Assembly (NCBI GenBank): GCA_050084985.1
Contig: JBITNC010000002.1
Coordinates: forward strand, 28,458,001-28,522,000
Length of the DNA: 64,000 nucleotides
Origin: Nageia nagi
Lineage: Eukaryota; Plantae; Pinophyta
Direction of reading: 5' to 3'
The notes beneath the pieces were generated by a model. It did no database searches. It had not been told where the DNA came from and worked only from the letters and a program-made list of their open reading frames with translations. Positions 6,931-59,185 of this stretch are shown here, in pieces. The translations under genes were made by a program, and so were the position numbers. How positions within the stretch are numbered: the stretch's first letter is position 1; each line of letters opens with the position of its first letter.

Positions 6931-6939
6931 ACTACTTTC

Positions 6940-8190: not shown

Positions 8191-8200
8191 GAAGTAGGAC

Positions 8201-17640: not shown

Positions 17641-20600
17641 TGTTGGTGCAGATTCCCTTAGAAGATCCAAATAAATCTCCAAAAAAAGTAATTGATTTAC
17701 ACAACAAGCAAACCAATGGAAGAATAACCCTTTTTTTTAACACACACCTTATTTTATTCTTCTGAATCTGCACTACCTTTTTCAGGTCTGTTACAATAGC
17801 TCATATAGCCAAGAGAAAACTTGCACTTCCAGAAAATCACGAACCGTCCGAAAACTCGCACTTACAAAAAATAGAAACTTTCTAAAAATAGACAAATGGA
17901 AACTTTCTAAAAATAGAAAGGTCCTCAGATCATGGCCAAACTGGGCGTGCAAGCACAGTTAACAAGGACTAAAGGAACTCTCACTTATTATCTTAAACAA
18001 ACTCTTACAACAAAAGATATTAAAGTCTACTTATTGAGAAATCCTGAAAACTGACACTAAAAGCTAATTTTGAGGCACTAAATGATGGATTTAGGCCAAT
18101 CGGAAAACTTTCCGTTTGGACGCATGCCTCCCATAGGAGGTTGCCACCGCATGATAAAAACCCATATTTAGCTCTCCTCAAAATTTCAAGACGATCCGAC
18201 AGTCGGATCAAAAGTTATGAACGTTTGACGGTGCATCATTCTCCTCTGGTTGAAAGGAACTCTGCTCCTGCGAGTTCTGCTGTTGAAATTCCTGAAGTTT
18301 ATCATTAGCAATCCTCCTTACTTTTTCCTCTGAAACCCATGTATTGTCCGCTGCTGATAGCCCTTCCCATTGTACCAGGTACTTGGTATAGCTCCCATGT
18401 CGAGTGTTGAACACTGTCTGATCAAGGATCTGTGTAATGCGCTCCTTTTTCTTAGGAACCTGTTGCTCCCATTGTATTGGAGTTGTAGCCTCAACATCTT
18501 CATCATCACCATGGAAAGCATATAAATCAGAGACATTGAAAATAGGAGAAATATCTAAATTATCTGGCAACCCCACCTTATATACATTGTTGTTCCTTTT
18601 CTCAAGAATCCTACATGGACCAATCTTCTTTAGCTTCAACTTATTATAGGTGCCTTTGGGAAACCTCTCCTTACGAAGGTGGACCATCACTAAGTCACCC
18701 TCCTGAAAAATCTTTTCTCTCCTATGGGCATCTGCTACTGCTTTATACTTACTATTATTCTCATGCAATCGTGCTCGAACCTCCTCCTGTAGTTGGTGTA
18801 TGTGCTCTGCAAATGCCTCTGCATTATCACTAATATTGTCTGTGATTGGTAATTCAACTAAGTCAAGGACACCCTTGGGATTTTGGCCATAAACAATTTG
18901 GAAAGGCGATTTCCCTGTTGAACGATTCACTGAACTATTATATGCAAATTCTGATTGTGCTAATGCTCTATCCCACTGCTTTGGTTTTGCACCAACTATA
19001 CACCTTAACAAATTTCCCAAGCTACGATTTACAACCTTGGTCTGGCCATCAGTTTGTGGATGATAAGCACTGCTGAACTGTAATTGGGTACCCAACTTTT
19101 TCCATAATGTTCTCCAGAAATGGCTCAAGAATTTGACATCTCGATCTGAGGTAATGGATTTTGGAACACCATGCAACCTAACAATTTCATCAAAAAATAG
19201 AACTGTGACACTAGTGGCATCCTCTGTCTTCTGACATGCAATGAAATGGGCCATCTTAGAGAACCTATCAACAACAAGGATGGAGTCCTTACCTCGTTGA
19301 GTACGTGGTAATCCCAACACAAAGTCCATGCTTAAGTCGACCCATGCTCCTGTCGGAATAGGTAAGGGCATATACAAGCCGGTATTTTGGGCATGGCCCT
19401 TTGCCATTTGACATATCCTACATCGATTGACAAATCTGATCACATCTCTCCTTAGCTTTGGCCAATAGTACTTTTCTGCAACAAGCACCAATGTCTTATC
19501 TATCCCAAAGTGTCCTGCCAGACCTCCACTATGAAGCTCCCTCAAAATATTCTCCCTCATAGAACCAATTGGAATACATAATTGTGTGCCTCTAAATAAG
19601 TAACCATCCTGTATAATGTATTCTGAAAGAATGTTACCACTCTGACCAAAGGTTGGATTCTTAAACTCTTGCATCATCGGTCCAAAATCAGCATCATCTT
19701 CATACATATCTTTGATACCCTCAAATCCAACCACTACATTTTCCATGGTTGTCAGAAATAATGATTTCCTACTCAGTGCATCCGCCACCTTATTCTGTTT
19801 TCCTGATTTATGCTTCAAAGTGAATTCATACTCTTGCAAAAATGATACCCACTTTGCATGCCTTTTATCCACTTTCTTTTGGGAATTGACATACCGTAAC
19901 GCTTCATGGTCAGTAAAAAGCACAAACTCCTTGGACAGCAGGTAATGACGCCAATATCTTAGTGCTTGTACAATAGCATAAAATTTGACATCATAAGTGG
20001 AGTAGTTCTTCCTTACCTCATTCAATTTCTCACTGAAGAATGCTATCGATCTTCCTCCTTGGCTCAACACGGCTCCAATCCCAATATGTGAGGCATCACA
20101 ATCAACCTCAAATAGTTTTTCAAAATCTGGTAACACTAAGACAGGTGTTGTTGTTACCTTCCGTTTCAAAAGCTCAAAACTCTTTGCTACTTCCTCTGTC
20201 CATATAAATTCCCTCCCCTTCATGCATTCTGTGATGGGGGCAGCAATGCTACTGAAATTCCTAATGAATTTCCTATAGAAAGCTGCTAATCCATGGAAAC
20301 TTCGTACCTCTGTTACATTTCTTGGGACAGGCCACTCAATGATTGTCCTCACCTTTTCTTCATCCATTTTGAGGCCATCTCTTGAAACTACAAACCCCAA
20401 AAATACTAAGCTCTCTTGAAGGAAGCTACACTTCTTAATATTGGCATACAATTTCTCCTTTCTTAACAAATCTAACACCAGCCTTAAGTGAAGCATGTGA
20501 TCTTCTGCAGTCTTACTAAAAATCAAAATATCATCAAAGTAAACCACTAGAAACTTACCATTGTATTCCCGTAGCACTCTATTCATCAACCGCATGAAGG

Positions 20601-22125
20601 TACTTGGTGCATTGGATAACCCAAATGGCATCACCATCCATTCGTATAATCCATCTCGAGTCTTAAAAGTTGTCTTCCATTCATCACCCTCTCGAATCCG
20701 AATCTGGTAATAACCACTCCTCAGGTCAATCTTACTAAAGTAATTAGAGCCAGCTAAAGCATCCATCATATCATCAATCCTTGGCATCGGAAATCTATAT
20801 CTTATGGTGATCTTGTTTATGGCCCTGCTATCAACACACTTCCGCCATGAGCCATCCTTCTTGGGAGTCAAAAGTGCAGGAGTTGCACAAGGACTCATGC
20901 TCTCCCTAACCAATCCCTTCTGTACCAATTCTGTTACTTGTTTATTCATTTCAGCATTCTGTGTTGGGCTCAACCGATAGGCTGCTTGATTGGGAAGAGA
21001 TGATCCTGGGATTAAATCAATATGGTGCTGGATATCCCTCTTTGGTGGTAGTCCATTTGGCAATTCTTCTGGTAGGACATCTGCATATTCCTTTAGCAAC
21101 TTCCTCACTACAGGTGGTATGAGGATCTCCCTTGTTTCTACCTTTTGTGTAGTTAACACATAACACCAACCAACTTCATGTGCTTCTGTGAGAAATCTTT
21201 TTGCGGTCAAAAGGCTTTGTCCTTGGGCTTCTTCCTTAAGGGATAAAAGAACCACCTTTACACCATCTTTCCAGAATGTGTAAGTGTTCTTACTTCCATC
21301 ATGATGAGTCTTCCTGTCAAACTGTCATGGTCTCCTAAATAATATATGACATGCATCCATGGGAATTACATCACACCATACCTCATCTTTATAAGTATCC
21401 CCAATGGAAAACTTTACTAGACACCTCTTATCAATAGTTACCTCATTTCCCTTCTTGATCCATGAAACACGATATGGACATGGGTGCTTTTGACATTTGA
21501 GTTTCAACTTATCAACCATTACAGTAGAAACCATGTTTTCACAACTACCACCATCAATTACTATGTTACATACCTTTCCTCCTGTTGTGCATCTTGTATG
21601 AAATATATTGGTACGAAGCCAACAATTACCACTATCCTCAGCTTGCATGTTCTCCTCCCTTGGAACAATCAGGGTCCTTCTTATCATTAGGTTCTCACCC
21701 ATATCTGCAGAAACTTCTGTTTCAACCTCCTCTTCTTCCTCAACTAGAGCAACCCTAGCATTTCCCCTCTCTTCAGCCTCATATTGGGGACATTCAGATG
21801 CCTTGTGACCTTCTTCATGACATCTATAACAAATTAATGGTTTCCATGTGCCAATAGTAGATCGACCCCCTCCATTACCTCTTCCTCTAGGGTATCCCCT
21901 TCCTCTCTGACTTTGGTTTACCTCTTCTTGTTTAGTGGGTACGAAGGATTCTCCCTTGGAGAAATTAGATCCTCCTCACCCCCGATTCGAAGGTGTGAAT
22001 CCCTTCTTTCCTCCTCGATTGGTCCTTCTCAATTTTTCCTCAACCTTGAGGGCTATTTGATATGCATCCTCCACAGGAGTGCGATGCATGTTAATTTCAT
22101 CTTGAATAACAAAGCTCAGACCATT
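17641..22125 (-). mobile_element. CRM-clade chromovirus (Ty3/Gypsy), 5'-truncated; 3' LTR about 17641-18238
   Basis: PPT AGAGGAGAA next to TGATGCAC; protease RTNIFHTRC...VIDGGSCENMV; gag cut at about 22125. Confidence 0.85.
18208..21255 (-). CDS. pol: Gypsy pol: RT, RNase H, integrase, chromodomain (1015 aa open)
   Basis: [29 protein letters not shown]...[27 protein letters not shown]...NTWV; the ORF runs into the 3' LTR. Confidence 0.95.
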
Positions 22126-22814
22126 TACGTATCTTGCAGACTGGTGAAGGGAACGTCGTCCTCACCACATAGGTATTCATGATGCCGACTCAGGTGACGA
22201 TGCGGAAGAGGATGAGGACACAGGGGATATACAAACCGGATGGGATGCTCCCTACACGGCGGTAGGGTGGGGAGGAGAGAGTAGCCCGACATATGCCCGT
22301 GACGCATCTCTAGATGCAGGTCATGATGACAACGAAGAGATAGATCCAGACCAGGATGAGTATGAACCTAAGGATGAGGCGGATACAGATGCGGAGGAGG
22401 AAGACGATGATGAGGATGATGACGGTAGCTTATTTTCTCTTTTGCTTTCTTTTGATTTTCTGCTTTCATGATATGCAAAAGACTAACATGATATGTCTAT
22501 GCTATGTCACAGATGACCAGGACCCTGAGGTTGAGATGGCTAGGCTACGCGGTCAAATCGGTTAGAAGGATGCGGAGATCAGAGAGCTACAGGGTCGTCT
22601 ACGGTTCGGAGGGGATTATATTGGCATCTATCAGGACCTACAGGCAGCCAACAAAGAGATCAAAGCCCTCTACAAGCAGCTTCACCAGGCCGAGAGACAG
22701 ATCGGCGAGGAGAAGGCGCGCGCAGAGAAGTACAAGGCACGGTGCGGGGGTGGCTCATCTAGCAGGGCTACTAGCTCTAGTGTAGGGGGAGGGGGCTCTA
22801 GTAGGAGATTCTAG
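22126..22814 (+). pseudogene. C-terminal part of an antisense extra gene of the retroelement (acidic tract + coiled coil), with an 88-nt intron at 22425-22512
   Basis: Removing the GT...AG intron joins ...EEDDDEDDD to DDQDPEVEMARLRGQIG*KDAEIRELQGRL...GGGGSSRRF* in frame; two in-frame stops. Confidence 0.7.
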
Positions 22815-23219
22815 GTCATTCTATGTGATCTCATCCAGTTGTATTAAGACTTCCTGTAAACAGAAACATTTTGATTTTTCATAATATATATATAAAATAC
22901 AAATTTTGTTACCTGCTTGCTCTTGTATGTGTGCTTGTGATGGATGAAACTAATGTTCCGTGATTCCTGAAAACGAACGCCAATGACACAACCTGCAATT
23001 CTGACTTCTCATGCTGCGGGGGGAATTGAAACCTTTGACTTTCTCCTGTTTTCCACTAAAAGAGAACCACCGGCGGTCCTATTAACATGAAATATAACGC
23101 CGGCACTCCTGTTATAACGTCATGAAGCTCCCCAATCTCTTCACCATGGCATCCGTTAGTGACCTGGACTGACTGTTAGCTTCTCTCTTTTTTTTTTGTG
23201 TTAGTTTAGTCATATCAAT

Positions 23220-25391
23220 CTACCAAATGATACCCCCGGAAAGCCTAGAGCTCCCACTGGTGCTAGCCTCATTCTGTCGTCCCTCTGACTGTCTTTCTAA
23301 GATCTTGATTCCCCTTGTCGTGTGTCCCTGGGCAAATAGTATTCCGGTACCATGTTGTGGCATTGGGTTCTTATATATCCCCAATTTTTCGTTATCTGTG
23401 TGCACTGGAGTCTTTCTTTTCTTTTCTGGTTTGTTGAATGAGATAGCCTTCTTATCTACTAAATCCTGAATAATATCTCTGAATTTTTGACATTCACATG
23501 TTTTATGGCCATGACCCCTGTGATATCTGCAAAATCCTCCTGTAGTTCTTGTGTTTCTTTGATTCACCGGTGGTAACTGGATCAAACCTCTTTGCACCAA
23601 TGACTGTAACAACTCATCATGATCTTCGGTAACTTTGGTATATGCTCTAGGGGTCCTCTGTTTCGTGGGTCCTTGCGACTCTTTGGTTGCTGCAACTGTA
23701 GCTATCACTTTGGTTGGTATTGGTTTTTCATCTTTCTTATGCCCCCATAAACCAATTTTCATCAAGTGTCTGTCTTTTCGAATCATGGATAGGATCATTT
23801 CTGTAAGGGGTTGTTCTAGATAATTGAAAAATTCGAGCATCACCTCATCCCTTAGTGACTTTATCAACATCTGCTTCAATTCCTTTTCACTTAATTCTAT
23901 GTATGTCGCCACTTTCTTCCAACCTGCCACAAACTCTTCAAATGATTGGTTCTTCCCTTGTCTCATTCTAGCCAAATCCATGATGGTAGGTTTCTTCTTT
24001 ATATTGTGTTGATACCGATCCAAGAACTCCTGTTTTAACTGTCCATAGATGGTGATACTTTGGTCCTTTAGGTCATAAAACCATTCTGAAGCTTCTTCTC
24101 CTAGACTGAGCTGAAATAACCTAGCCAACATATCCGCATCATGAAGGTGACTACAAGCTGCCTCCTCGAAAATCGTGATGTGCATCCTTGGATCACTTAT
24201 ACCGTCATACTTGCTGAATTCGATGTCTTCACCTTCCCATGTTCTTCTTCTAATTCTTGTGCAAAGAGGATGATTTTCTGTTAAATATTTATTTGCTTTT
24301 TCGTCATGTAACAATGTTAACTTTTTGAGCTGCTCGGCCATTGCTTGAAGTTGTGCCATTCTTTGCTCTGCTATCTCTCTTTGCCTTTGTTTACCTGTGT
24401 CATCCTGATCTGACTTCTCTTCTGGAGTTTTACACCCTTTTGTCTCTTCTTCTTTCTCATGGTCTGATGGTCCTGGGGTGAATCTTAAATTCTGTTCCTT
24501 CCATTCCTGTACTAGCTGTATCTCTAATTCTCTTATGATGATCTCTTTTCTGCATGATTGCGATTTTTGATAAGATCCCGTGCTGATAACCCTTCTTACT
24601 TCTGCTTCTTTAATCTCTTTTTCTCAATCTGACCAATAGGGGTAAGCATCAACCAGTCTCTGTGTTATTGGGTCTATTTCAAGCTCCGTCTCTGACTCAT
24701 CATCTGATTCTTCATCAAAATGTACAACTTCCTCTTCATCTGAATACCCATTGTTCACTTCTTCCTGTATTATTGTCTCATGATTTCTAAAATCTTCAAC
24801 AAAGGTTAGAGATGACATAGATCCACAAATATTTGATTTGATATCCTTAGGAGTGGAAATTCGTTGGTTAAAGCATGGCACATAAAATTTCTCATGATCT
24901 TCTATAATAGTCAAAGTTGATTTGATGAAAGATGCTCTAATGATTGATGTGAGATTGTTTGTAGTTTTGAATTTCCATAGGTAGTGGAAAGAGTATGCTG
25001 TGCTAGTGTCTGTAGCAAATTTGTAGAACATCCCAAAATCTTTCATAAACTGTTGCACTAACCTAAGTTTTTCTTCGGTAAGGTTCCAGCTGTTGAATTT
25101 GTTGGGTCGGTACATGGTTATTGACAAATCCTTTTCGAACATTTGGCTAATATTTTCTAGGGTTTCACCATCGGAACTATCGTTGTCTTCGGAATCACCA
25201 TTATAGGATTCCTCATTTGGAAGTTTATCTTTGATAATCCCAGGAGCACTCTCTTTGTTTAGTCTAGCACTTTTCCTAGTTGGCTCTGTTCCTTTCCATG
25301 TTTTTCTTTTCCTCTTAGGTGATGATTGAACTAATGAAGAATAATCTTGAAATTCATCTATATCTTTGTCCATTTTCGAATTAGCAAGCAT
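23220..25391 (-). pseudogene. gag: Tat/Ogre-type gag with long N-terminal extension (ORFs 24624-25391 and 23220-24359)
   Basis: FSKYDGISDPRMHI, LFQLSLGEEASEWF, RQGKNQSFEEF, zinc knuckle CRYHRGHGHKTCEC; no pol follows. Confidence 0.85.
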
Positions 25392-32000: not shown

Positions 32001-32702
32001 CTTTGCATTACTTTCACAAAGCTTCCTCCTCTTTGCTCCTCTATCCTATCTATTCTATTCTATTCTGGTCCATTCCATCCTATTTATAAAATGAGCAATA
32101 AAGGGTATTTATTGTTTTTCAAGGCACAACTGCCTAATGTTTCTCTAATGCAAGTGAAATAAAATGGAAATTGTACCGAAATTACATTTTGCTTCTATGA
32201 GCCAAAACTATTCCTCACAAGAAATAAACTAAGTAAATATCATTGTTTTAAAAAGTGTTTTAAAACAAGTAATGTTTGAAACTGAATTTTTTGCCTGCTT
32301 CATTTGATCTTCATGCCTTGGTGTGAGTAATAATCTTTCCTTTGAATATTCTTTCACAAAAGCACCTTGAGCCTTTTATGTCATAATGGAGAACCACCAT
32401 GGGATTGTTCAAAGCCTTGGATATTTCTTTCATTTAACCGCTTCTGCTAAGACTCGACCCTAGAATATTGACAAATTTGTCGATCTAGTTTTTGAGCTCT
32501 TCTTAAGATCGTATCTCCATCTCTTGTAATTCCACCATCTTTGAAGAAGTCCCTTAAGTTCAATTTTGTCATTTGGCACATAGACTTTTTGCTTTAGAGT
32601 TTCTACCGCCTTGAGAGCTTTTGTTCTAGAAGAACTCATCCTTTATTTGAAAGAATTCATGTTGCAATAGACAAGCAAGATTAGTTTGATCATGGTTCGA
32701 GT

Positions 32703-33192
32703 AAATGACCATCACTTCAATAAATCTCAATGACTGGATGACCCTTCCTAAGTTTCACAATGTTTGGGTGGGGTAAGATTTTAAGACTTTAAACAAGTGC
32801 GAATTGGGGCATAGATAGGAAAATTCTCACACCAAAAGATAAGTTACCTTTTTAAGACCCAGAAATGGTGTGAACAACTGTAAGATCTCCTTGAGATGTG
32901 ACCTATTTGTTTGAACTTATAAGAGCCTCAAATGATGCAATTAGAGGAAATGACCATCACTTCGATAAATCTCAATGATTGGATGACCCTTCCTAAGTTT
33001 CACAATGTTTGGGTGGGGTAAGATTTTAAGACTTTAAACAAGTGCGAATTGGGGCATAGATAGGAAAATTCTCACACCAAAAGATAAGTTACCTTTTTAA
33101 GACCCGGAAGTGGTGTGAACAACTGTAAGATCTCCTTGAGATGTGACCTATTTGTTTGAACTTGTAAGAGCCTCAAATGATGCAATTAGAGG
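32703..33192. repeat. Tandem duplication, 2 x 245 bp
   Basis: AAATGACCATCACTTC at 32703 and 32948; near-identical copies. Confidence 0.95.
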
Positions 33193-33924
33193 AAAATTAC
33201 CTAAAAAACTCTTACATTTGTAAGGCATCAAAATGTTTCAACTTGAGATCGGAGGTTAAGTGTTTTCGCATTTGGAAAAATCTTAAGTTTTTATGGCACA
33301 AAAATGGTGCGAAATGGGTAAGGATAATTTTGATCTTTCACACCAGAAGAAGAGAATTTCATTTTCACACCAACAAGAGGGATAAAAATTTTAAGACTAT
33401 TTTCTGTGCGACTGTGAATGAGTGTTTTAAGCCTCGAAAATGGTGTGACTAGATATGGAGATGGCGAAATGATTTTTGCAACAAAAAAAGTTTTACAATC
33501 TTAAGAGAGTGAAATGGCGAAGAGGCCTTTGTGCTTTTTACACCAAATTTGAATCTTACAGTTTTAATCCTTGAAAATGGAGCAAACTGTTGTAAGAGGC
33601 ACAAATGATGCGAATTTTTAAGACCTTCTGGAGCTGTGATTGGGAGAGACCAGAAGGATTACGCGAAAATAGGAGCTTGGATGAATATTTATAGGTTCTT
33701 TCTCCTCTTGGGACACATGTCAGCTTCTCATTGGTTGTCAAGTCAGCCCTTTTAATCTTCAAAACTAGTGCGCCCAAGGTGAATTTGCACTTGTTCCATG
33801 TCTTAATTTTTAAGCCTTCAAAAAAGTGTGACTAGGTCCATTTTCGTACTTAAAAAAATTTTAAAGTTTTAAGCCCTCGAAATGATGCAACTTAATGCAA
33901 TTCGCACCAAAACCGACTTTACCT

Positions 33925-34345
33925 TTTTAAGACCCTCTAGAGGTGCGAACTAAGCTTTTTGAGCATTTTAAGACCCTCTTAAGGTGCAAGTAAGTTTTTT
34001 GGGCATTTTAGGACCCTTTAGAGCTGCGACCAAGCTTATGTGCATTATAAGACCTTATAGAGGTGCGACTACGCTTTTTGGGCATTTCAATACTCTCAAG
34101 AGGTACGACTAAGCTTTTTGGGCATTTTAAGATCCTTTAGAGGTGTGACTAAGATTTTTAAGCATTTTAAGACCCTCTAGAGCTGCAACTAAGTTTTTCG
34201 AGCATTTTAAGATCCTCTAGAGGTGCGACTAAGCTTTTTGGGCATTTTCACACCCTCTAATGGTGTGACTTTGTTCTTTCAGCTTGTTAAGAGCCCATAA
34301 TGGTACGAATTAGCCTTTTAGGCTTGTAAGACACTGAAATGGTGC
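33925..34345. repeat. Minisatellite, ~40-bp unit (TAAGACCCTCTAGAGGTGCGACTAAGCTTTTTGGGCATTT), about 10 copies
   Basis: Directly visible periodic repeat with degenerate copies. Confidence 0.9.
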
Positions 34346-37172
34346 GAATTTTCCTCTTGACCCTTACAAATCCCCATCATGGTCCAAATTTGCTCCTTCA
34401 CTCTTCAAAAACAGCTCTTGGCTTGGATCTTGACACCTTTTTCTATCTTTCAAGTGTCCATTCCCCTAGAGGCATCAAAAATACCTCATCTCGTCCCTTC
34501 CAAACAATTCTCTTTGTTGCCCTAAAAAAAATTGAGGCCTCCAAAATTTGAAATTTTGGGGTATGTTTTGCGCGCACAACAAACCCTCCACACTCCACAT
34601 GTTGCACCAAATGATGCCTTTAGGACACCCAGCTCCACTGACAACTCTATAGATCTCTTCCTTCTTCTCCTTCAGCAATAGTATCATAGGCACAACCCTT
34701 AAGGACTAACAAGATCTCTACCTAATGCAAAGAGCACCTACATGCGCTCTCTCAAATAGACCCAAGATGACCCTTCCCTCACCGCTTTCCTTAGGGTTTG
34801 GATCACTTTTGTATGGATCTATGTAATGTACCTTTCTAGGGTTTATCCAATTAACTACTTGATCATGCATTCATTCGCAAATTAGGGCATCATAGTAAAT
34901 GTTCATTAACCATCCAAACATGTGCTCAAAATTGAAATATAACGACAGTAGCCAAATCTGATATAAATCTCATATAACATGCGAATATGACCAATCTAGG
35001 GCACAATTTCAGATCTATAACATAACAAAAATATATAGGAACATTCATTCACATTCAAGACGCAATACAAGAACCAAGATCATAAATAATCAACCAAGAA
35101 TAAGTATAGGGTTGTAACAAGACTGTAACAAGTTCTAGGGTAAAGCCTAAGACTCAAAGATGCTCAATCTAGACTCCTCAAGGCTGGCGCAAATCCCAAG
35201 GAGGATCCCAAGCTTGGCACAAGTCCCAAGATGGTTCCCAATGGTTGGCGCAAGCTTACAAATGGCAAAGATGGATGGCGCAAGTTTTCCAAGTGATGTA
35301 GAAGCGTAGAAGAGCCACTTCTAGGCTAAGGAGCAACCTTAAGCCCTACAAGGTAGAGAAAGGAAGCATCCCCAAACTCTGAATGATCCAATATCAAATG
35401 CACAAGATGATCCTTCAAGTGGCCATAATCCATGCTTATATAGGTCTCCAAACTTGCAAATATGTCCCCCAACAGGCAGCTGACTAGGAGGGGAGTAATA
35501 ATAAAACATTAAATAACTCCCAACCTTCCTAACATGGCCAACTTGGTGCAAGGGTGATAGTTTATCATAATGGCCTATTTAATTGGCCCAAATAAATATA
35601 TAATTTGCCCTTATTGAGCGTTGCCTTTGAGGCACAAGTGTAAATATGATAAATAAATAATTTGACAAGTAAAACACTCCTAATCTAAATAATAAAATCC
35701 ACAATGAATAGGCATGGGGGGTGACTTCTAGATGTTTCAAATTGGGGACATTAGAAGTCCTCCCTCCTCAAATTGCTTGCCCCCACGCAATTTCAAACGC
35801 ATTCCAAAGTGGCACTTGTTTTCTTGCATAGCCTTCAAGTGTACCAAGCCACCCAAGTGTCCCAAGTGGTGCTTGATTCCATGACTGACCTCTAAATATG
35901 CTTGCAAATGGTCCAAGTAATCCTCATAACAATCCCTTGGCATTATCAAGAAAATACAATCATGGAGGCAGCTATCCCAAGGTGAAGAAGCAAAAAATGT
36001 TGATGATGCATGTTTTTTCAACCTCCAACTGTGTGCCTTGCTTCCAAACTGATCCCAATGCCTTGTTGTCCCAAGAATGTGGAAAATCACAAATGATAAG
36101 GTGATGGTCTGACTTATTTCCAAATGCTCTCTCTTCATTGGATCTTGTTGTCATGTCTCTTGTGCTAATTGTACTGAACTTGGTAGGGATGTTCCCAATC
36201 AAAACAAGGTATAAATCAGTCAATAGGGGACTGATTTTTGAGTCCACAAACTGTGTCTTCTTATCAGCAATCTTTAACTCAAATTCTTCAAAAGTTTCCC
36301 AAACTGAACTGTATTTGTTTGTGCCTAAATCATGGGGAAGTAATACATTTAATGTCCATAAACCTTTGATGTATACCTTGATTTCCAATGCTATGAGGTT
36401 GTAGTGACATGTTGTGCTCCCTTTTAAACAATGCACTTGGCTGCCCCAATCTTGGGTGCATATCAACCACAAATATGTCTCTTACTTTTGCAATCGAAAG
36501 TGAAGGAATGAAAGAGGGTGTATAGTCGTTATAAGGATGCAAAGGGCTGTCATACCTTCTTGGAAATATCATACCTTGCTGTTCAACATCTGAGTGTAGG
36601 GAAAGAGACTAGTTTGCTTCTTTGAGTATGCCTTTTCCTTGCCACTCCTCCTTTCTAGTCTTTGTATGAAGCAAGCTTTTGATACCATGCTCCAACCACC
36701 TATATCCAAGCTTCATTGTGGCCCAAGGAGGTGATGCAAAATGGTATACTGCTTTCAAACTCCGGAGCACTGTAGTGGTTCTTGTGAGTGATAGAGGGGT
36801 TGAGTTTTTTCCCCAATGTGTGCCTTTGGCCTTCATTAACACTGCTGCAAATTTTATGAATGCTGATGTCCCATCTAGTGGCAATAAGCTTCATTTGTTT
36901 GCCTCCAACTTGAAGTGGAGACCAAAGTGATGTAACCATACTATTACAAAAATCAGAACTGATCCTGAACTTTATCAATACTGAGTTTATTGTTGTTGGC
37001 ACTGTTATACCCCCCTTGAAAAGGTGTCATGGCTGATTGGAGTCCTTTTCAATCTATTAACAGTTGTCAAAGGGTGTGTGGCATTGATGTCTCTCAAAGT
37101 GATGATGGTGTGGTTTCCAAAGATTAATTCAGGGTCTCTAATTGTCCACTTGCACCTAGTTGAGTATCCCTT

Positions 37173-37802
37173 AACTTTGAAAACATGTTTGGCGGTTTTA
37201 CCAAGAGAACGGTATGGTCCCCTTGTACCCTCTCTAAGAATGATAGGTGAAACCATGCAACACTAATGACATACATGCATACAGGAAAAATCACTCAAAT
37301 AAAATAACCTTTCCAAAAGATTGGTTGTCGCCCCATGGGCTACCATACAATCTTGTTCAATATTTCCAAAATTTATACCTCCATACTCTCTTCTATCATT
37401 AATTGCCATTAAAACCTGATCAACCCTTCCCTTATCGGTATCCACCTTTTCAATTAAAACATCACCGCTACCAAAGTCTGAAGTAATGTGAGGCAGACCA
37501 TCAAATTTTCCTGTTTTGTGCTTTCCTCGATTTGACTTTCCAAAACCTTTGGATGAATCTTTAGGGTCATGGTCATTATAGTTGGTCTCCCATGTGAATG
37601 TATGGAAATGCATGGTTTGAAATAGTCCATGATTTACTGAAGCTTGATTTATAATCGAAGAGTCTTCTTGGTTGTACCCATGGTGATCATTGACAACAAT
37701 AATAGCACTTTGATCATTATAGTGCTTTGCCCTTTTGAGGCATTCATGAGACATAGTCTTAAACAGAGGTTTTTGAGGATAAAATAATAGGTGCGAAGCG
37801 GT
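37173..37802 (-). pseudogene. NRPD2: Captured, intronless, internally deleted fragment of RNA polymerase IV/V second-largest subunit
   Basis: LLFYPQKPLFKT..ECL, HHGYNQEDS, GLPHI...GSGDVLI, KGRVDQVL, YGGINFGNIEQDCMVAHGATTNLLERLFYLSDFSCMHVC, RGPY...HVFKV; diagnostic residues fit NRPD2/E2 rather than RPB2. Confidence 0.88.
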
Positions 37803-39006
37803 CCAATCTCTTCTTCCATCATCTGTCATATCTTCATGAATGGAGCTGAAATATAGAAGAAAACCTGAGTGTAAATTTGAGCCATCAGTAAACTCAATGT
37901 TTGGATTAAACAAGGGCCCCTCCACACACTTCATCATCATTGTTTCTTGCTGCTGTCCATAAACTGAGTGTAATAACAGGATCAGATTTTTCTTTCCAAT
38001 CATGCCATCAATTTCGCCAAGTGGGACATGTAGGGCATCCATACAAGTGACCCTAAATGTTCCCACCAATGTGGACATGCTAAGTCTCAATTTGATCAAC
38101 CTATTGCCTCTCATTATTGCAAACCAAGGAGAGGAAATGAAACATAGTGTACTGCTGTAATAAAAATCATTGGTACAGCCATACCTTTTTGAAGATATCA
38201 CATGCTGCTGTCCAAAATCAGAATGTAGTAAGAGAGCATGATTTGTTTCTCTGATCATGCTATCATCCCCACCATGATTATGAGGAAGGTTCTTTGGTAC
38301 CATTGTATGAAGTGTTCCTTTAACTTGGTGTTTCATTGGTCCATGTCCCATTCCCAATGCATCCCAAATTGAGTTAATTAAACTCAATATACTGTTATAG
38401 AAATCAGAAATGTTGTAGTACCTTTGTGAGTGGGAATGTGGCTAAATCGTGCCTCAAATGTGTGCCCTTGAACTTCCTTTATGCTGAGTGCACTGCTGCA
38501 AAAATCAGAAGTGTTGTAATGTCTTTTATGAGTGGTAATTTGGCTGGTCAATGACCTTAAAGAGTACCAAGATGAATCCATAAGTGGTGCACCCCTTTTG
38601 AAACTCTTCAAAGTCTTCTCAAGAATGGGTTTACCATGCTGATGTTGTGCTACTCTTTCTTCAGTGCCAACTTCTAGACTTGTCACATCTTCTTCACTTG
38701 TCATGGTTCCTACACAAGGCTTGTGAACCAAGTCATCTTCTTGCGGAAAGATGTCATCCTTCCTTTCATCATATTCTTCCTTTCAGGGCATATTGATGAT
38801 CTCAATCATGTCATCAATTCCACTAATCATAGAAATCTCATTTTATTTATCTATTAGAGTCATTGTTTTGTTCTTTTCCTCATGCTCAACATTATCAATA
38901 GTAGTTGTATGTATATCTATAAAATCATTTGGAATTCCATCATACATATCTCATGAGATAAGGTGTTTTCTTCATGTGATTCGAGTTGCTCTTCTTCTCT
39001 AATCTC

Positions 39007-39390
39007 CTAATTCTTCTTCTCAAATCGTTCACGGATCTTTTGGCTGAAGTCTTTGAAAGTGATGATGTGTTCAAGGCCCAAAGTGGTAAGGCCATTGTAC
39101 CACCATTCATCCGCAATACCTTCAAGGTGGAGTGAAGCATACTGAATTACATCCTTCTCATTCATCGAACGGAGGGTGAAGTATGCTCTCATCTTTTGTA
39201 GCCATACTTTGATGGAAATGTTGCTTCCATTGAACATGAACACTTGCAATTGCTTGTAGTACTTGCTTCCTTCGTCAATCTTCTTCCCAAAAAACTTCAA
39301 ATATCCGTCAAATAAAACCGCTTGTCTAAATTCATCACTTTTTGCTTGGTATTATGCGAAATGGTCATCCATTTTATGCTCTTGCAAGAA
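39007..39390 (-). pseudogene. gag: Truncated Gypsy gag N-terminal region
   Basis: FNGSNISIKVWLQKMRAYFTL...LHLEGIADEWW...FSQKIRERF; homologous to 4372-4620 and 58500-58700. Confidence 0.85.
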
Positions 39391-40829
39391 CATGGGTGAT
39401 GACTTGGAATCTTTTGATGGGGTTGAGCGAGCCCATAAACCTTGTTTACAAACTAAGCTAACAAATCGTACATATACTTCAACTAATCTTGACGAATAGC
39501 TATCTCTCTAATTCCTCACAATCTAGCAAGAGTTAGAGCTCTAATACCACTGTAATGTACCTCTCTAGGGTTTATCCAATTTCTTACTTAATCGCGCATT
39601 CATTCACAAATTAGAGCATCAAAAAATGCTCATTAACCATCCAAACATGTGCTCAAAACTGAAATATAACAGCAGTAACCAAATCTGATATAAAGCTCAT
39701 ATAACATGCGAATATGACAAATCTAGGGCACAACTTCAGATCTGTAACATAACAGAAATATAGCTTCAAAACACTCTAATCCGTATACATTCCGATGCAC
39801 AATGAAGATAATAGCATAGCAGATATATATAGGAATATACGTTCACATTCGAGACGGAATATAAGAGCCAAGATCATAAATAATCAACCAAGAATAAGTA
39901 TAGGGCTGTAACAAGCCTGTAACAAGTTCTAGGGCAAAGCCCAAGACTCAAAGATGCTCAATCTAGACTCCTTAAGGCTGGCGCAAATCCCAATGAGGCT
40001 CCCACGCTTGGTGCAGGTCCCAAGACGGATCCCAAAGATTGGCGCAAGCTCACAAATGGAAAAGATGGATGGCGCAAGTTTTCCAAGTGATGAAAAAGCG
40101 TAGAGGAGCCACTTCTAGACTAGGGAGCAGCCCTAAGCCCTTAAAGGTACAGAAGGGAAGCATCCCTAAACTCCGAATGATCCAAGATCAAATGCACAAG
40201 ATGATCCTTCAAGTGGTAACGATCCATGCTTATGTAAGTCTCCAAACTTGCAAATATGTCCCCCAACAGGCAGCCGACTAGTAGGGGAGGAATAATAAAA
40301 CATTAAATAGCTCCCAACCTTCCTAACATGGCCAACTTGGTGTAGGGGTGATAGTTTATCATAATGGCCTATTTAATTGGCCCAAATAAATATATAATTT
40401 TCCCTTATTGAGCGTTGCCTTTGAGGCACAAGTGTAAATATGATAAATACATAATTTGACAAGTAAAACACTCCTAATCTAAATAATAAAAGTCACAATG
40501 AATAGGCATGAGAGGTGACGTCTAGATGTCCCAAATTGGGGGCATTACAATCTATTTGCCTTGTGTTATTTTATGCTTTCTTTAAGATGGGCCCTGTAGG
40601 GGCTTTGTTAGTTTCTTGACCATGCTTGTACATGCTAGTCCCCTTGACCACTTTTGGTCACCCAAAAACAGTAATATAGTTTCTTTCTTTTTATCTTTGG
40701 CATGTGACCAATATGCATTGCAAAAAAATCAGTAATATAGTTTCTTTCTTTTTCTAGTCAAAGGAATGCTTGCCTTCAACATTGCAAAAAATATATTTTC
40801 TCTTTTAGAGAAATTATTGACAAAAATAA

Positions 40830-50700: not shown

Positions 50701-52898
50701 GCATTATTTTCTCAATTTGCATTTATTTATCACTTTGTAAAATACTCAGCGTGCATTTTTTTTTAATGTAGATAGACATGCAATATTTTATCTAACATGC
50801 TATAGATAAAAAATTAAGTAAAGAATTATACAATTTTCCCCCTTTTACTTAAAATTTTATCCTAAAGATAGCATGCTATTTTTACTTAGAATTTTAACTA
50901 AGGAAAGAGGAAAAAAATTAGCTAAGTATTATTGCCTACAATAAGCTTTAAAAAAGGCTTAATTAATGTAATTTTAGGCATTAAAAAACATCTACTTCAA
51001 TAATTCATTTTCTCCATTTAAACAAGTGTTTAATAGGTTATGATGCTCCTACTAGTACTTGAAAAAAAAAAGTTAAATATATTAAATGAAATTTACCAAA
51101 GCACTCCAAGTAAAGTTTTAAAAAAATACTTTCAATTAGATTTTATTCATAATGGAGTACTTCTTAGTAAGCAAATAAATGCATTTAGGTAAAAGTGATG
51201 GCTACCCCTCCCTTACCAAGAAGGAGAATACATTGTTCTGCAAGTACATTTAATAAAGGCCAAAAAAAAGGTTGCAAGAAATCAATTAAATGCACAGACA
51301 AAAAAGGAACCTCCACCTTTATTCTAAGGCAAGAAGGAGGGCAATGTCAAAAGGAATGCAGAGTGGGAGAAGACCGCCGTGGGCTCTAGTAGCTAAATTA
51401 AAAATCGATCTAGCAGATGATCGGACTAGAAAAAAAAAACTTCCACCTTGCCCTCCAAACCGACCAAGAAGATGACGTGGTGGTCACCTCCAACCACTGG
51501 CACCCCCATGTGGAGGAGGCCGGGAGGCTCGAGCGGCAAGCTGCGAAGAGAAGACAATAGATAGGTAGGCGCAAACAGTGGAACGAGGAGAAGGTCAAGA
51601 GGCGCGGGCCAAGGAGAGACAACGGTCAGAGCCACCCAACACGTTGATGTTTTTTTTACTAATTTTAGGGGGTTCAAGTCAGCGTGGCCGAGCAAGGTTC
51701 AAGAAAAAAAGGGCTCGACTGACTTCCCTCTGTCACAGCCGCGCCATGAAGTCAACCGCACCATGGGCCACCCTCTCATGGATCTCAAGTCCACATGGCC
51801 TATCAGGGGTTCAAGGTGTTGATTTCGAATTTTTGATTATCAACAGACCCCCTCTGAATTTTTTGTAAAAAAAACTTTTTTATTATTAATTGTGTATACT
51901 AATCCCTTCTCCCCTTTTTTTTAATAAAAAAATAACCTTTTAATATAAAAGATTATAGCAACATAGAGAGCAAAATTTAAAAAAAAAAAACATTGCAAGT
52001 AAAAAAATAGTATCAACATATGAATTGCATCATACTGCTAGTTCTAAGTACAAAAAAAAAACTAACACATAGCAAAAAATATGTTAGTATTGATATTATA
52101 CAAATTTGTATACTAACTCTTTTTAAAATATATATATATATAACAATTTTGAAGAAAAAATTGCAAGTAATCATAGGAAGTTAGTATAGATAAAAAAATG
52201 TACTAACCATATTTTGCTTAAAAAAGAACTAACATAACAAAAAATATGTTAGTAGCATAATGCAATAATCCAAAAAAAATAAGGATGTTTGTACCTTCAC
52301 AATACTTTTACCTCAACAAGAAAGAGTAGGATGAGGAATGAAGAAAAAGAGTTTCCACACCAAGAAGAAGAGCTTCCACACTAAGCTCTGATACCAATTT
52401 GAAGGAACTAACACTAACAAAATAATTCCTAAACAACCAAGATCTCTTGAAAGCTCACAAATAACATTTAAACAACTCACAAAGCAATCTCACAACACAA
52501 CACAAGATGTAAGTGGTTCCTCCAACTAGGAGTACATCCACTAACTAGATCTTTACTTCAATCACAAATACAACTCTCTTACAATCCTCCTACACTCTTC
52601 TCCTAATCACTATCCTATAGCATAACTTTACCCTACAATTGGTGTGTAATCACAAAGAGGGAGCCTTCTATTTATAAGCCAAAATCCCTCTTTTGATTAC
52701 CTTTTTATCCAATGTACAAAAGCATGACATTCACATCCTTTTACCCAAGGGGCACGCTCATGATATGAAGTGTAGGACAAGTTACATTATCATATTCACT
52801 TAAATACTTAAGGTATCAAATGATACCCTTAAGTATTAGTGAACTTACATAGAAGATTATTACATAACCTTTACAATAATGCATTATACAATCCAACA
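44775..52898 (-). mobile_element. Full-length decayed Ty1/Copia LTR retrotransposon
   Basis: LTRs 44775-45269 and 52400-52898, TSD ACCCC, PBS TGGTATCAGAGC (52385-52396), PPT TAAGGAGAAG, domain order gag-PR-INT-RT-RH. Confidence 0.95.
45962..49853 (-). pseudogene. Copia gag-pol with stops and frameshifts
   Basis: WIVDSSCTNH, LVHSDLIGP, LRSDN, KARLVAKGF, LYVDDLLI, RTKHVEI. Confidence 0.95.
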
Positions 52899-53149
52899 AC
52901 CCCAAATATCGAATGTATCAAACTGACATTAAGTTAGGAAACACAAGAATTTAGCAACCACCAAAACATAACCACTGCCAGTTACAACAGTTTATCACAA
53001 AATCTCATATGAGGACAAAAAAGAACAAAGCATAGCCGCAAACTTAAACAGGAAGCTGAGGAGGGTGGAAATTGTCCACATCGCCCAAGTACTCCCAACC
53101 TTTATCACCTGGGTTTGATATATCTCAACCATCATTAGCATTAGTACCA

Positions 53150-53390
53150 TCGTTATTATTATTAATTTTATTATTTTAATTTTTTTTATCATTATTGTTA
53201 TTATTTTTATTATTATTATTATTATTTAAATTGTTATTGTTGTTATTTGTATTTTTTCTTATTATTATTATTATTTTGTTGTTGTTGTTGTTGTTGTTAT
53301 TGTTATTATTATTAATTATTATTGTTATTATTTTTTTTGTAATTGTTATTATTGTTATTTATTTATTTATTTATTATTATTATTATCATC
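53150..53390. repeat. (TTA)n/(TTG)n low-complexity tract
   Basis: Direct inspection; a second tract lies at 53895-54075. Confidence 0.95.
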
Positions 53391-54077
53391 TTGGGCTTTT
53401 AGGCAGTTACATGTTTAGGCGGTTACATGTCGTCGACTCTCTAACAAACAAAGCACATACATAATGCTACATGTTGCCAAGCAGTTATAAGGCCCAAAAG
53501 CCTTTTGTAGCTTCTACAACTTGGGCCGCACAGGCCACAACTAGATCTCATTTGCATTTCAAGCCATGAGATAAGATTAATGACCGAGGGTGAGTAGGTG
53601 GGCATCTACAATTTTCAAATGTAAAGCCATGCTTTATAACCTTTGCTAGCAGCATGTGCAGCCATGGAAGCTTCTACAATGTAGCTATGGACATCAATCC
53701 AATAATAGTTGAAAATGGTGTTTCATCAAATATTGTGGTAACGAATGGCTTTGATAGATATTTATGTTGTTTCCTAGCGCGTGCCACCATGAGGAGGCTA
53801 GACAAAGGTATCAACGTCCATTTATGGGTTATTGAGGCAAGACTCGAAGGATATGCACAAAACAAATACATTGAAAGCGTTCGTGAATTATTTGACAACT
53901 ATTACTACTATTATTACTAGTAGTACTATTACTATTGCTATTATTATTTTTATTACTATTGTTATTATTATTATTGTTGTTGTTGTTGTTGTTGTTTTTA
54001 TTTTCTTATTATTCGTTATTCTAATTTATAATTTATATTTAAAATTTAAAATTTTTATTTAAATTTTAAAATTTATA

Positions 54078-54957
54078 TGCCTATCCTTTCCCTTTCCTTT
54101 GCAAGGTCATATGCTTCACTCCTCGACCTCGCCCATTCCCTCGCCTCTTACGGGCTTGTAGTCACCCTTCTCACCACTCCTCACAATGAGCCCCTCCTCC
54201 ATTCCCTACTCACCATCGCTTCCTCATAGGGACTCCACATTCAACCTCTCATTCTCCCCCTCCCTCCGACAAATGGATTGCCTCCACATTCCAAAAACAT
54301 GGCACACTTCCCCTGCATCTCATTCTCAATCTCATTTACTCTTTCGAAGACCTGCCCCATCCAATACAATAGTGGTTACTTCAATAACAACAAGAGAATG
54401 ACGAAGGGTTTGGGCCTCCCACCTGTATGATAAGAGATTTCTTTATGGGTTGGACTTAGGACACCATCGCCAAGCTCAAAATACCCAAAGTAGTATTCTA
54501 CCCATTGGGAGCGTTTGCCATCTCCATTATTAACTCTCTGTGGAAACACCTCCTCCATGAAAGCGTGGAATCTAACAATGACGAATTCTCTATTCCCGAC
54601 CTTCCCATCCTCTTATCTTTCGAAAACTTTAAATACCTATGATGTTATAGAACTTTCAGAGAATGCATCCATCTTTGACTTCATCAGGTACATGATGGAT
54701 TTGACTGTGAAAAGTAAGGGCATTACTATGAACACCTTCGATGATTTGGAGTCTCTTTATTACACCATCTGGGGAAAGTTTTTGGCAAGCCTTTCTGGTC
54801 CATGGGTCCATTGCTTGCATCCGATGTGTTGCAGGATAAGCACGAATTCAACGTGGTTCATAGGGGCTACCATAATTCAATCAATGAATTTGCATATCTA
54901 TATTGGTTGGACTTGAGGAAGGAGAAATTTGTTGTGTATGTCTACTATGGTAGCTCG
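54078..54957 (+). pseudogene. UDP-glycosyltransferase (family 1, UGT89-like) N-terminal fragment
   Basis: PFPLQGH..LLDLAHSLASYGLVVTLLTTPHN, DFFMGWT, KIPKVVFY, MNTFDDLES, WSMGPLL, YWLD.RKEKFVVYVYYGS; ends before the PSPG box. Confidence 0.85.
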
Positions 54958-54979
54958 ATTGAGCTCTCCCAAGTACAAA

Positions 54980-55230
54980 TCCACGCATATGCAAAATGTG
55001 GAAGAATACGCAAAGCCCAAGAATTGTTCGACAAGAAGCATGATGCAGACACAGTTTCATGGAATGCAACGATCACAAGATATGCACGAAATAGATACAT
55101 CGAAAGGGCCCGTGAATTATTTAACAAGATGCATGATAAACACAGTTTGCAAGAATCACAGGATATGCACAAAACAGATACATTTTAAGGGCCAATGAAT
55201 TGTTTGAAAAGATGCATGATGCAGATAGGG
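54980..55230 (+). pseudogene. PLS-class PPR fragments (another at about 53820-53900)
   Basis: YAKCGRIRKAQELFDKKHDADTVSWNATITRYARNRYIERARELFNKM; EGYAQNKYIESVRELFD. Confidence 0.85.
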
Positions 55231-56099
55231 ATTGAAAGCAACTATATTACTATGTGAAAACCATGCAAACCTCTAGGATCAACGGCTAACAATGTCTCAA
55301 TGATGGCCAGTTGTAAGCGATTGCCAACCGTGGGATTAAAAACTAAGCTTCAAAAGCTCCTTCGATGTAATTATAAATATAAAATATATATAAAAGTGTT
55401 GATTTTTTTTTTTAAATATTCTTATGAAATTTTAATTAATCATTAACATCAAAATGCAAATATAATCAAGTTATCAAACGCGTGAAATTCAAAAATTCAA
55501 ATCATATTTCATTATCAAACATATATCATATATGAGAATATTTGCAAACTTTTGACAGTCGGAACTTGAAAGTAACAGTTGTAAATCTATAACAATGTAA
55601 ACTTGTAACAATATGCTTGCAAGTTGTAATAGTATGCTTGTTTGTAAGTTTGTAACAATTATAAACTTGTAAATAGTATCCTATATTTGTTTCTCATAGA
55701 TTGTGGAAAGTGGCAATCACCAATTGACAAGCTTGTTGCATGCATTTAAATTTTCTAGCTTGTACAACATGTTTTTCACAATTCTGTAGTTATAAATGTT
55801 TCTAAGCTTTATACAACATGTCAAAACCAAGTCCTTTCAAAAATGTTATTTCTACTAAAAATTTAAAATATTCAGGACTTGCATAGCACACCAAACCTTA
55901 AGGAAGCAATTGTCAAAATCATATAACAGGTTATAAAAGAAAAACAATTGCCCAACCATATGGGGCAAAGACATCTGGGAGTTTCCAAGATGTCGAGGGG
56001 ATGTCTAGACTTCCCCCACATGTCTCGAGCATGCCTTGTCCAGACGTTGGGTATATTTGCTTGTGTTCAACTTAATTGCACTTGAATTTGTAATTGGAT

Positions 56100-58260
56100 C
56101 TTTACATTAGATGACCTTCAGAAATCACTTGCCCCTTGTTCTGAACGGTTGATGAGGGAAACCTTAATCAGTTTTGAGAAGGATGATTATATATTTTGAG
56201 AAAGTCACATTTCCATCTTTCTCTGAAAAGGTGACCAGAGCATAGAGAAAGCACTTTGTCCAGAGGTGTACCATTTTCAAATTTGGAGTTCACCCGAGGT
56301 AGGAATGGAAGAAAATGAAGATCAACTTTTAACATTAGTTGCTTTAGAAATGTGTAATGTTGCGGAGATAAGGATAGTAAAAAGGAGAATACCTCGATAA
56401 AGTGACACCTATTTTCATGAAAAATGACATTTGTTCCAAGTAAAATCTATAAAAGAGAGACCTCAAGGGATCATTTACACATCGGTAGAAGCAAGTATGA
56501 GTTCCTCAAAGATGAGTCCTTCAAAGGCACAAAGTGCAAGATAAGATAATAAGGGCTAGAGCAAGTTTGGAAGAGCTAAAGGCTTCATCATGGCAATTCA
56601 CTACCCCAATGTGGTTGGATCCAAGTTTTTATGATTGTATCGCTTGTGCCAAAGTTGTGCAGCAAAGGAATAAACAAAAGGCTGAAAATACAATCCAGCA
56701 AGTGAAATGTAGGGAATCTTTTATTACCCCTCAAAGAAATACAATGTCCATCAACAGGACTATCTCAAAATGAAAGACGCCTGTCAAACCCTAGGAGTTG
56801 AAGGTCAACACTGAACAATTATAGGTAGAATGAGATATGGAAGAACTTTCTCTCCAAGTAACCCAATTCCTTGCAAAAAAAAAGGAATCAACACCACAAA
56901 GAAGCAGATTTCTATTCTGATAGATAATGTGACAATACTTCATAGGATACTGATTGGCGACCTGAATTATCAACATAAAAAGCTGGAAAGAATTAAAGAA
57001 TGTCTCTTTTACCTAGATTGGCTATAGTATGCAAAAGAAAAGACTCCAAACATGGTCATCACCAGTGCAAATTTTGTCAATAATTTTGGCCTATTTGATG
57101 TACTAGATACAAGGATACAAAAGATCTAGGATTTTCTCAATCAAAACTTTGAAGATCTTGAAGCATCAAACAAAGAGGAGCAAAACAAGGAAAAAGAACA
57201 TCCTATGAAGCCTTAGTTCAATAGTTGTGGTTACATGCATAAGGAAGTAGAATGAAACTTTTGTTGTAATACCTGAATCATGAGGATGAGTTGAGCTCCC
57301 ACAAATTCAAAGTCAATAATTTCAGCTATTTTTTATTTTATTAGTTTATAATCAGTACTTTGGCAGTATTAGGTTGTTAAAAAAATAATAATTAGGTTTG
57401 GCCCTTCAATTGTTTCAAAGGGTGTTGTGTTGTTAGATTTGTGTCAAACATTGTTGTCAGAACTTGACCCTTCAGTTGTTGCAAAGGGCATTTTTGGGTT
57501 GTGTCAGTCATGTTAGTTACTTTTCATTAAATGTTGGTTGTTAAATTAGGGCAACAATTGTCAGACTCAAATGTTATAAGTACCCCATGCGGGGTCACTT
57601 TTCAACTCAAAATGGAATGCAAAGAAGTTTGCCCAAGAACAATTGGCCTTTGGTGTTTATTCTTGAGTTGTGATTCTATATTGATGTGTTGATTGCTATT
57701 CGTTTAGTGGGGTTGTGGAATATTTTATACAATATCTTTAATAGTTGCTTATTCGCTTGTGAGCATTTCCTTTGAAAACTTCGAGTTTTAAGGAAAGAAG
57801 AACAATTATCTTTTGAAGTGATTAAGTAACTATCAGTTTCATACTTGCACATTAAGTGTTGTATTTTGGGAAATATTTGTTTCTATGTCATTTATGTGGA
57901 ATCTTGTATGCATAACAGTGACTAGTGATTGAATGTTGAATGCATCTGGTGTTGTCTTTACCACGCTCTGCTTCTTACTCATTTAAAGTTGTACTTCGAG
58001 CATTCTTGTTGTATACCTCTTTAATTTGATAACTACATAAAGATTCCCGCCAAACTCGGATCCTAGATCTTCCAAACCCTGCAATACTGGCGAATCGTCG
58101 TCATTCGTACTGAGTCACTTTGAGTTTCTTCCATTCTCAGCCTTTTTTCTTTATTTATTTTTCTTTTTGTTAACAAACCCCTACAACTTTCATTGAAGCA
58201 AGACCTGAATAGGTCCATATAAACTTGTGAGTTAATATTCTCGTCACTTGCTTTACTGAG
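56100..58260 (+). mobile_element. Retroelement 3' extra-ORF remnant (coiled-coil-like) followed by LTR-like sequence
   Basis: Chained broken ORFs 56534-57215, then a T/G-rich LTR-like region; family not identified. Confidence 0.4.
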
Positions 58261-58479
58261 TTGATCAACCTACCATTTTATATTGTCCAGAGGCACGATG
58301 GGTCTCTAGTAATTCTAGTCCTAGAGGTCATGAAGCCAAGTAGCCCCATAGGGTAGTCAGTCCCTTAGAATGGAGATAGGTAACGCTATCTCACCATATA
58401 TGTTAGTGAGGCCTCTTTCTCTTGCTAAGCCCACCTCCGTTTTGCCCTTGTAAGGTAGGAAAGAAATCAACACCAACAA

Positions 58480-59185
58480 AACCCTTTCACTAAATTCGTT
58501 GCAGGTCATGATAAATCACATTCATGAGTGGTTAAGCCATGATACCACCAATTAGAAGCAACTCCATCCAAATGCAAGGTTGCGAATTGCATCGCATCTT
58601 CCTCAAGCATAGGACTAAGAGTAAAAAATGTTTGCAAATTATGCAACCATGCTCTAGTTGTCAACTCCTTCTTTCCATCAAATAGCGAAATACTTTGCTT
58701 GACTTCTCTCTGGTGGCCTACAGAATGTTGATCACTGCTTACTCTTTCGCAAATTCTTCAAGAAACTCTGAAAAATGGCCAAAGCCTTGAGATCTTCATT
58801 CTTTCCTTGGTATTCTTTGAAAAGAGCATCCAACTCCTTGGGGCTCACAAAACTCGGGTCTTCTTGCCCTAGCAAAAACATGGGACGAAATGGGGAAGGC
58901 AAGGATGGAGGATGCATAGGGGGTGGACGTCCATGTGTGCTCCATGTGGGACCTTCTCTAGCTTCTAAATTCTACACAAACCTATGCATAGTGGGTCGAA
59001 CAATCATGGTTCCATCTGATCCAACCTTGGAGGTTGAACTGGATGATCATGGGTCAATCTCACCAAGTATTTCGCCATCTTGTCAATCACTATGTCCAAT
59101 TTTTGCTCAATCTTTTGGTCAAGATTGCTCACGCATCCGGTCCTCATGGCTCATAGGCTAGAAGGAGATCAACTTTGATACCACC
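58480..59185 (-). mobile_element. Gag 5' fragment with Met-type PBS, relative of the two cargo-bearing elements
   Basis: TTTGATACCA near 59173-59182; FDGKKELTTRAWLHNLQTFFTLSPMLEEDAMQFATLHLDGVASNWWYHGL. Confidence 0.8.

Follow-up and report, generated by a model that had tools for sequence, protein, structure and literature searches.

A pol-less Ty3/gypsy-type LTR retrotransposon carrying a fragment of NRPD2/NRPE2, the second subunit of RNA polymerase IV/V

Results

Organization of the element

The stretch of DNA analysed here, a window of 64 kb, harbors on its minus strand an LTR retrotransposon of about 5.7 kb that encloses a gag remnant and a fragment of the coding sequence for the second subunit of RNA polymerase IV/V (NRPD2/NRPE2), hereafter called the cargo (Table 1). 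The paired LTRs, perfect TSD, PBS and PPT listed in an initial annotation of the locus are all present, with one coordinate moved by a base. The LTRs align end to end and are 91% identical, with 81 mismatches over 933 aligned bases and 2 gap events (K2P 0.093). One change separates the TC at the start of the 3' LTR from the TG at the start of the 5' LTR. The PBS matches the 3' end of the initiator tRNA-Met at 11 of 12 bases. Depending on the rate that is applied, the divergence of the LTRs places the insertion of the element at about 3.6 to 21 million years.

The gag remnant matches the Pfam Ty3_capsid family with an E-value of 4.8e-6 and 26.6 bits, under the cut-off of 29.1 bits, and is 44-47% identical to the gag pieces of two other elements of the window (E 1.6e-15 and 1.6e-13). 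As had been proposed, the cargo lies in sense with gag, both being on the minus strand. No trace of pol (protease, reverse transcriptase, RNase H or integrase) was found in the element, either with Pfam or by tblastn with the intact chromovirus pol of the window, and the element is thus non-autonomous. It is an old copy of a non-autonomous, pol-less LTR family of the Ty3/gypsy type. The gag frame closes with a stop and the long ORF sits in another frame; there is thus no gag fusion in the copy studied here, which speaks against the gag-fused decoy suggested in the initial annotation.

The cargo block is flanked on opposite sides by segments A and A' (Table 1). These are 60.5% identical over 441 columns by blastn (E 4e-23), and their tblastx matches are colinear. 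Since the two segments are far more diverged than the LTR pair, the duplication is older than the insertion of the element, or the segments come from different source elements.

Table 1. Positions of the element and of its parts within the window.
Feature	Position	Strand	Description
LTR element	34822-40549	-	encloses the gag remnant and the NRPD2 cargo
TSD left	34817-34821		ATCTA, identical to the right TSD; direct sequence reading
TSD right	40550-40554		ATCTA; direct sequence reading
5' LTR	39551-40549	-	999 bp, ends TG...CA
3' LTR	34822-35755	-	934 bp, starts TCTAATG and ends TACA (minus strand)
PBS	39538-39549	-	TGGTATTAGAGC, one base beyond the 5' LTR; direct sequence reading
PPT	35756-35769	-	GAGGAGGGAGGACT, abuts the 3' LTR; direct sequence reading
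gag remnant	39007-39300	-	Ty3 capsid-like, followed by broken frames; same sense as the cargo
Open frame	37266-38441	-	392 codons, coding-like N-terminal part and NRPD2 cargo; from the ORF list and six-frame pieces
Upstream part of the open frame	37827-38441	-	205 codons, coding-like, in the frame of the cargo, not NRPD2
NRPD2/NRPE2 cargo	37134-37826	-	231 codons; limits by tblastn and profile search (hmmsearch)
Cargo piece 1	37826-37395	-	about residues 795-953 of the full-length subunit
Cargo piece 2	37403-37134	-	about residues 1068-1153 of the full-length subunit
Segment A	38105-38539	-	435 bp, partner of segment A'
Segment A'	36476-36885	-	diverged second copy of 38105-38539

The window contains several other repeats. 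On the minus strand, positions 18208-24359 hold a chromovirus-type Ty3/gypsy element with an intact pol frame of 1015 codons, which includes reverse transcriptase, RNase H, integrase and a chromodomain, and a gag frame of 379 codons; the closest relatives of its pol in the databases are angiosperm elements, 55-64% identical. This element is a possible source of proteins for nearby non-autonomous elements. A second LTR-bounded element, at 2504-8782 on the plus strand, has a gag piece (4381-4624) that is 47% identical to the gag studied here and a protease remnant (RVP_2) at 6594-6872; its remaining frames have no Pfam match. Between LTR-like repeats (52460-61014), a frame of 128 codons on the plus strand (54802-55188) encodes PPR repeats (E 1.8e-11) and may be another captured host fragment. 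A gag-like piece is found near it, at 58691-58527. Tandem repeats outside the studied element comprise a 245-bp unit present twice, a 40-bp unit present about seven times and a periodic array of 9-12 bp in two blocks, at 32696-33185, 33923-34321 and 53102-54067.

Identity and extent of the cargo

The motifs LFYPQKPLFKT, HHGYNQEDS and RGPY, by which the captured NRPD2/NRPE2 piece had been recognized, are all located within a minus-strand ORF at 37263-38387, to which Pfam assigns the Rpb2 domains 6 (E 1e-18) and 7 (E 7e-9). The best solved structure for the cargo is subunit 2 of Pol IV/V (7eu0_B, E 7e-39), with matches over residues 732-868 and, separately, over residues 1063-1108; RPB2 chains reach about 1e-22. 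A protein search that covered 1.84 billion representatives returned as its top match an NRPD2-like partial protein from Taxus chinensis (E 6e-54, 53-60% identity), followed by proteins from Diphasiastrum, Triticum (named Pol IV/V subunit 2-like), Ensete and Adiantum. The initial observation of an NRPD2/NRPE2 piece inside an LTR retrotransposon is thereby confirmed.

The cargo does occupy 37173-37802, where about 210 codons had been reported, and its true extent is slightly wider. It comprises 231 codons in two directly joined pieces, between which about 160 residues are deleted; it has no frameshift and a single in-frame stop, at 37260-37262. The cargo covers only the C-terminal third of NRPD2/NRPE2. 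Judging from residual similarity, the captured stretch probably runs to the stop codon of the donor, at about 37090. The reported lack of introns is borne out insofar as homology is uninterrupted across 432 and 270 nt; intron positions of the donor NRPD2 were not found in the literature.

We built a maximum-likelihood tree from 39 sequences and the 216 kept columns covered by the cargo, reading its stop as X and naming the groups after inspection of the tree. In this tree, the cargo and the Taxus protein are sisters (SH-aLRT 94). Together they join Triticum and Ensete in a group of seed plants (97), which lies within a clade of land-plant NRPD2 (99), and the RPB2-like sequences fall apart from this clade. 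Forcing the cargo into the RPB2-like group lowers lnL by 73.8 and is rejected (AU p 0.0014), whereas a position just outside the nine sampled NRPD2 sequences is not (AU p 0.30). The cargo is thus of the NRPD2 lineage and not RPB2, as initially proposed, whereas its nesting among the sampled NRPD2 sequences appears less certain.

State of the cargo as a protein

The residues missing at the join include the hybrid-binding core, GDKF..HGQKG. The join lies at a V-N-D / V-S-D microhomology of the donor, which fits what a template slip would leave. Two cysteines of the zinc ribbon are gone as well. Nine NRPD2 sequences, with lycophytes and grasses as the extremes, define 50 invariant columns; the cargo departs from 14 of them (28%), as compared with 2-7% for real genes in a leave-one-out analysis. 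Among the variable columns, 39% differ between the cargo and Taxus. Such near-equal change at conserved and variable sites is expected of a sequence under no constraint. In the tree, the terminal branch of the cargo measures 0.54, against 0.079 for that of Taxus.

From the 28% figure, we estimate that the cargo may have gathered about 0.15 substitutions per site since it escaped constraint, which would be about three times the changes gathered by the studied copy since its insertion. A full-length NRPD2 subunit, with hybrid-binding core, zinc ribbon and intact frame, is absent from the element. The cargo looks dead as a protein, pseudogene-like and unfit to serve as a polymerase subunit.

The long hybrid frame

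The cargo shares its open frame of 392 codons with an upstream part of 205 codons (Table 1). The chance that such a frame would have gained no stop under neutrality since the insertion is about 0.17, so that its being open requires no selection.

The upstream part gave nothing significant in searches for homologues with Pfam, against the PDB and in databases. We considered that it might be a further piece of NRPD2. A profile of 112 homologues, run with all filters off, scored it like shuffled sequences, and Smith-Waterman comparisons gave z-scores of -0.8 to 2.0. A match to Rpb2 families in a protein atlas disappeared once the piece was searched alone, and was thus taken as carry-over from the remaining protein. 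An origin from the protease of the element, prompted by a likeness by eye to the remnant at 6594-6872, found no confirmation (BLASTP E 0.35, nothing in Pfam). Two independent weak matches over about 37827-38111 (minus strand), one to the C2 domain of synaptotagmin (E 0.8-1.7) and one to C2 in the protein atlas (0.87), offer a lead, and only a lead, towards a possible C2-domain origin. The predicted structure of the upstream part is unusable (mean pLDDT 31.6).

Other copies of the family

Further copies were sampled as contigs from four public runs, one air metagenome and three coded organisms, aligned to 34690-40680; being contigs, they give no copy number. The cargo is covered by all four runs, and contigs bridge the 5' junction, the 3' junction and the internal deletion at 86-100% identity. 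A 1042-nt contig that spans 36966-37963 with 28 differences crosses both borders of the cargo and the deletion. Two stretches, 37011-37436 and 37441-38071, are covered by further contigs, with 58 and 91 differences respectively. Over 37395-37756, a contig from a run whose label as RNA is a guess only shows 100% identity. Since the same junctions are present in copies up to 14% diverged, the cargo was captured once and then amplified, and it is not the single copy that had been named as counting against the initial interpretation. No further copies were found among JGI metagenome contigs. The air-metagenome runs carry multi-copy contigs of the family, which suggests that pollen from the source species or a relative was present in the air.

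Selection among the copies had been raised by the initial annotation, and the variants do not point to it. The cargo variants of the other copies, a small sample pre-filtered by the listing tool, consist of 1 synonymous change, 8 nonsynonymous changes and 1 stop, a pattern close to the 27:70:3 that neutrality predicts. At several of these sites, the other copies retain the ancestral NRPD2 residue that is lost in the studied copy. The stop, Q324*, is present in all contigs of one run (X1) at that site and marks an abundant subfamily. It breaks the frame of the 1042-nt contig, whose gene call (P0004) is thus only 65 residues long.

Changes of C>T and G>A together make up about 45% of the differences among copies. 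The CpG observed/expected ratio is 0.27 in the element, 0.36 in the cargo and 0.34 in the whole window. The depletion of CpG and the excess of C>T fit the signature that long-term methylation would leave.

Discussion

We consider it likely that the element is an old copy of its pol-less family in which a single capture of NRPD2 was amplified, and that the cargo is now a pseudogene-like passenger. The ancestor of the family would have captured, once, the 3' third of a host NRPD2/NRPE2 coding sequence, most probably because reverse transcriptase switched templates to a host mRNA that had been packaged alongside. The internal deletion may have occurred by microhomology. Autonomous relatives would then have supplied the proteins that copied the chimeric element many times. 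Since its capture, the cargo has evolved under no NRPD2-like constraint, as a passively carried passenger. Neutral capture, the null explanation of the initial annotation, fits best with a decay without constraint and with variants rich in nonsynonymous changes, and the scale of fragment capture reported in gymnosperms makes it more likely (PMC13477047). According to this 2026 comparative study, a gymnosperm genome contains on average about 400,000 captured gene fragments, and those in conifer TEs come from an average of about 12,000 donor genes (PMC13477047). With such numbers, NRPD2 is expected among the donors by chance if the present genome is that of a gymnosperm, as is suggested by the affinity of the cargo to Taxus and by the pollen-like matches in air metagenomes. 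No mention of NRPD or Pol IV was found in the main text of that study, so that NRPD2 is not described there as a donor.

Some observations sit less easily with a passenger. That the 392-codon frame is still open despite a 9% difference between the LTRs is mildly unexpected, even at a chance of about 0.17 for stops alone. The cargo-bearing family did amplify, so a benefit from the cargo is conceivable. Finally, the peptide runs NLLERLFYLSD and ILREGTRGPY are identical in Taxus, and nucleotide identity to the host gene over at least 21 nt may persist.

These peptide runs also bear on a counter-defence, in which siRNAs raised against the cargo copies would strike host NRPD2 as well, dampen Pol IV/V and favour the element. 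The cargo is multi-copy and sense-oriented in an element of the transcribed type, and cross-talk of this sort has precedents in miR820 (PMC3459959) and in work on epigenetic conflict in maize (10.1101/777037). Runs of 10-11 residues are identical between the cargo and the nearest NRPD2, so local nucleotide identity may be high, and it is because such long runs are still common to the cargo and Taxus that cross-talk stays conceivable. We nevertheless judge it very unlikely. No inverted repeat that pairs two arms of the cargo was found and the RNA fold is ordinary (z -1.07); a precursor of the miR820 type is thus absent, and no hairpin or inverted duplication is available to yield a miRNA or hairpin RNA. 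The cargo has also diverged by an estimated 0.15 substitutions per site, the family bears the mutational signature of methylated DNA, and in Platycladus orientalis the TEs that carry gene fragments have no methylation advantage (PMC13477047). Moreover, about one third of conifer genes are donors, so the presence of NRPD2 needs no selective explanation. A related proposal, in which the amplified cargo would either soak up or give rise to 21-24-nt RNAs matching host NRPD2, with silencing feeding back on Pol IV/V, is decidedly unlikely; if true, a giant genome of the gymnosperm type would contain, in a retrotransposon, the equivalent of the miR820-DRM2 loop.

Other readings attribute a role to the protein of the hybrid frame. 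Like Bs1 of maize (PMC13317346), the element might have given rise to a new chimeric gene whose role, for the host or for the element, has nothing to do with silencing, a view that could draw on the long open frame linking two coding-like parts and on the weak C2 leads in the upstream one. It is very unlikely, since the variants among copies look neutral, the N-terminal part has no homologues in the database search, and chance could account for the frame having stayed open. The chance is remote that the protein instead acts as a dominant-negative decoy that binds NRPD1/NRPE1 or other subunits and poisons the assembly of Pol IV/V. The frame does include some of domain 6 and the beginning of domain 7, and an identical contig comes from a run guessed to be RNA, but that label is itself a guess. 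Furthermore, the frame ends before the zinc ribbon, of which two cysteines are lost, lacks the hybrid-binding core, has changed 28% of the invariant residues, is unfused to gag, and is stopped at codon 324 in an abundant subfamily. The probability is close to negligible that a processed NRPD2 pseudogene entered the element after its integration. The only point in its favor is the presence of an uninterrupted coding fragment, but no poly-A tract or duplication surrounds the cargo, and this scenario is ruled out by the diverged contigs of other samples, which share both junctions and the internal deletion. Deprived of the core and of two zinc ligands, interrupted by a stop, changed at invariant residues, devoid of a hairpin and marked by a methylation-type signature, the cargo leaves the anti-silencing role put forward in the initial annotation unsupported, as far as can be read from its sequence.

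Capture of gene fragments by transposons is already known, and the family studied here is a further Bs1-like LTR example, pol-less and multi-copy, with a host fragment in sense that forms part of a hybrid frame. As in the maize Bs1-type elements, pol is lost, a gag-like remnant is kept, the host sequence is uninterrupted and in sense, a hybrid frame is present and the family has amplified (PMC13317346). Unlike in Bs1, the donor is a gene of the silencing pathway, a single donor is proven with the C2-like second one being a lead, and the status of a new gene is not claimed. The captures described in PMC13477047 are alike in being old captures, each of a single gene fragment, by TEs, including LTR elements, whose carriers are not less methylated; that work also treats the epigenetic conflict between donor and TE, and differs in being a census. 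With miR820 of rice CACTA transposons, which targets OsDRM2 (PMC3459959), the element shares the carriage of sequence related to a host RdDM component. However, miR820 has a hairpin precursor and a proven, co-evolved target site, whereas the NRPD2 cargo has no hairpin and is decaying. VANC of the VANDAL/Mu-like elements is a transposon-borne anti-silencing factor, as was proposed for the cargo; VANC is a conserved protein, encoded by the element and under selection, whereas the cargo is a host fragment that has been truncated, contains a stop and has lost key residues.

The passenger cargo is valuable above all as a well-delimited example, and as a dated marker, of an ancient capture event that went on to spread with its family. 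Capture of gene fragments is common among plant transposons, and silencing of the element can spill over to the gene from which a fragment came. In the present case, that gene encodes a core component of the silencing machinery, which makes the family a natural test case for such spill-over. If true, spill-over onto NRPD2 would tie the strength of RdDM to transposon load.
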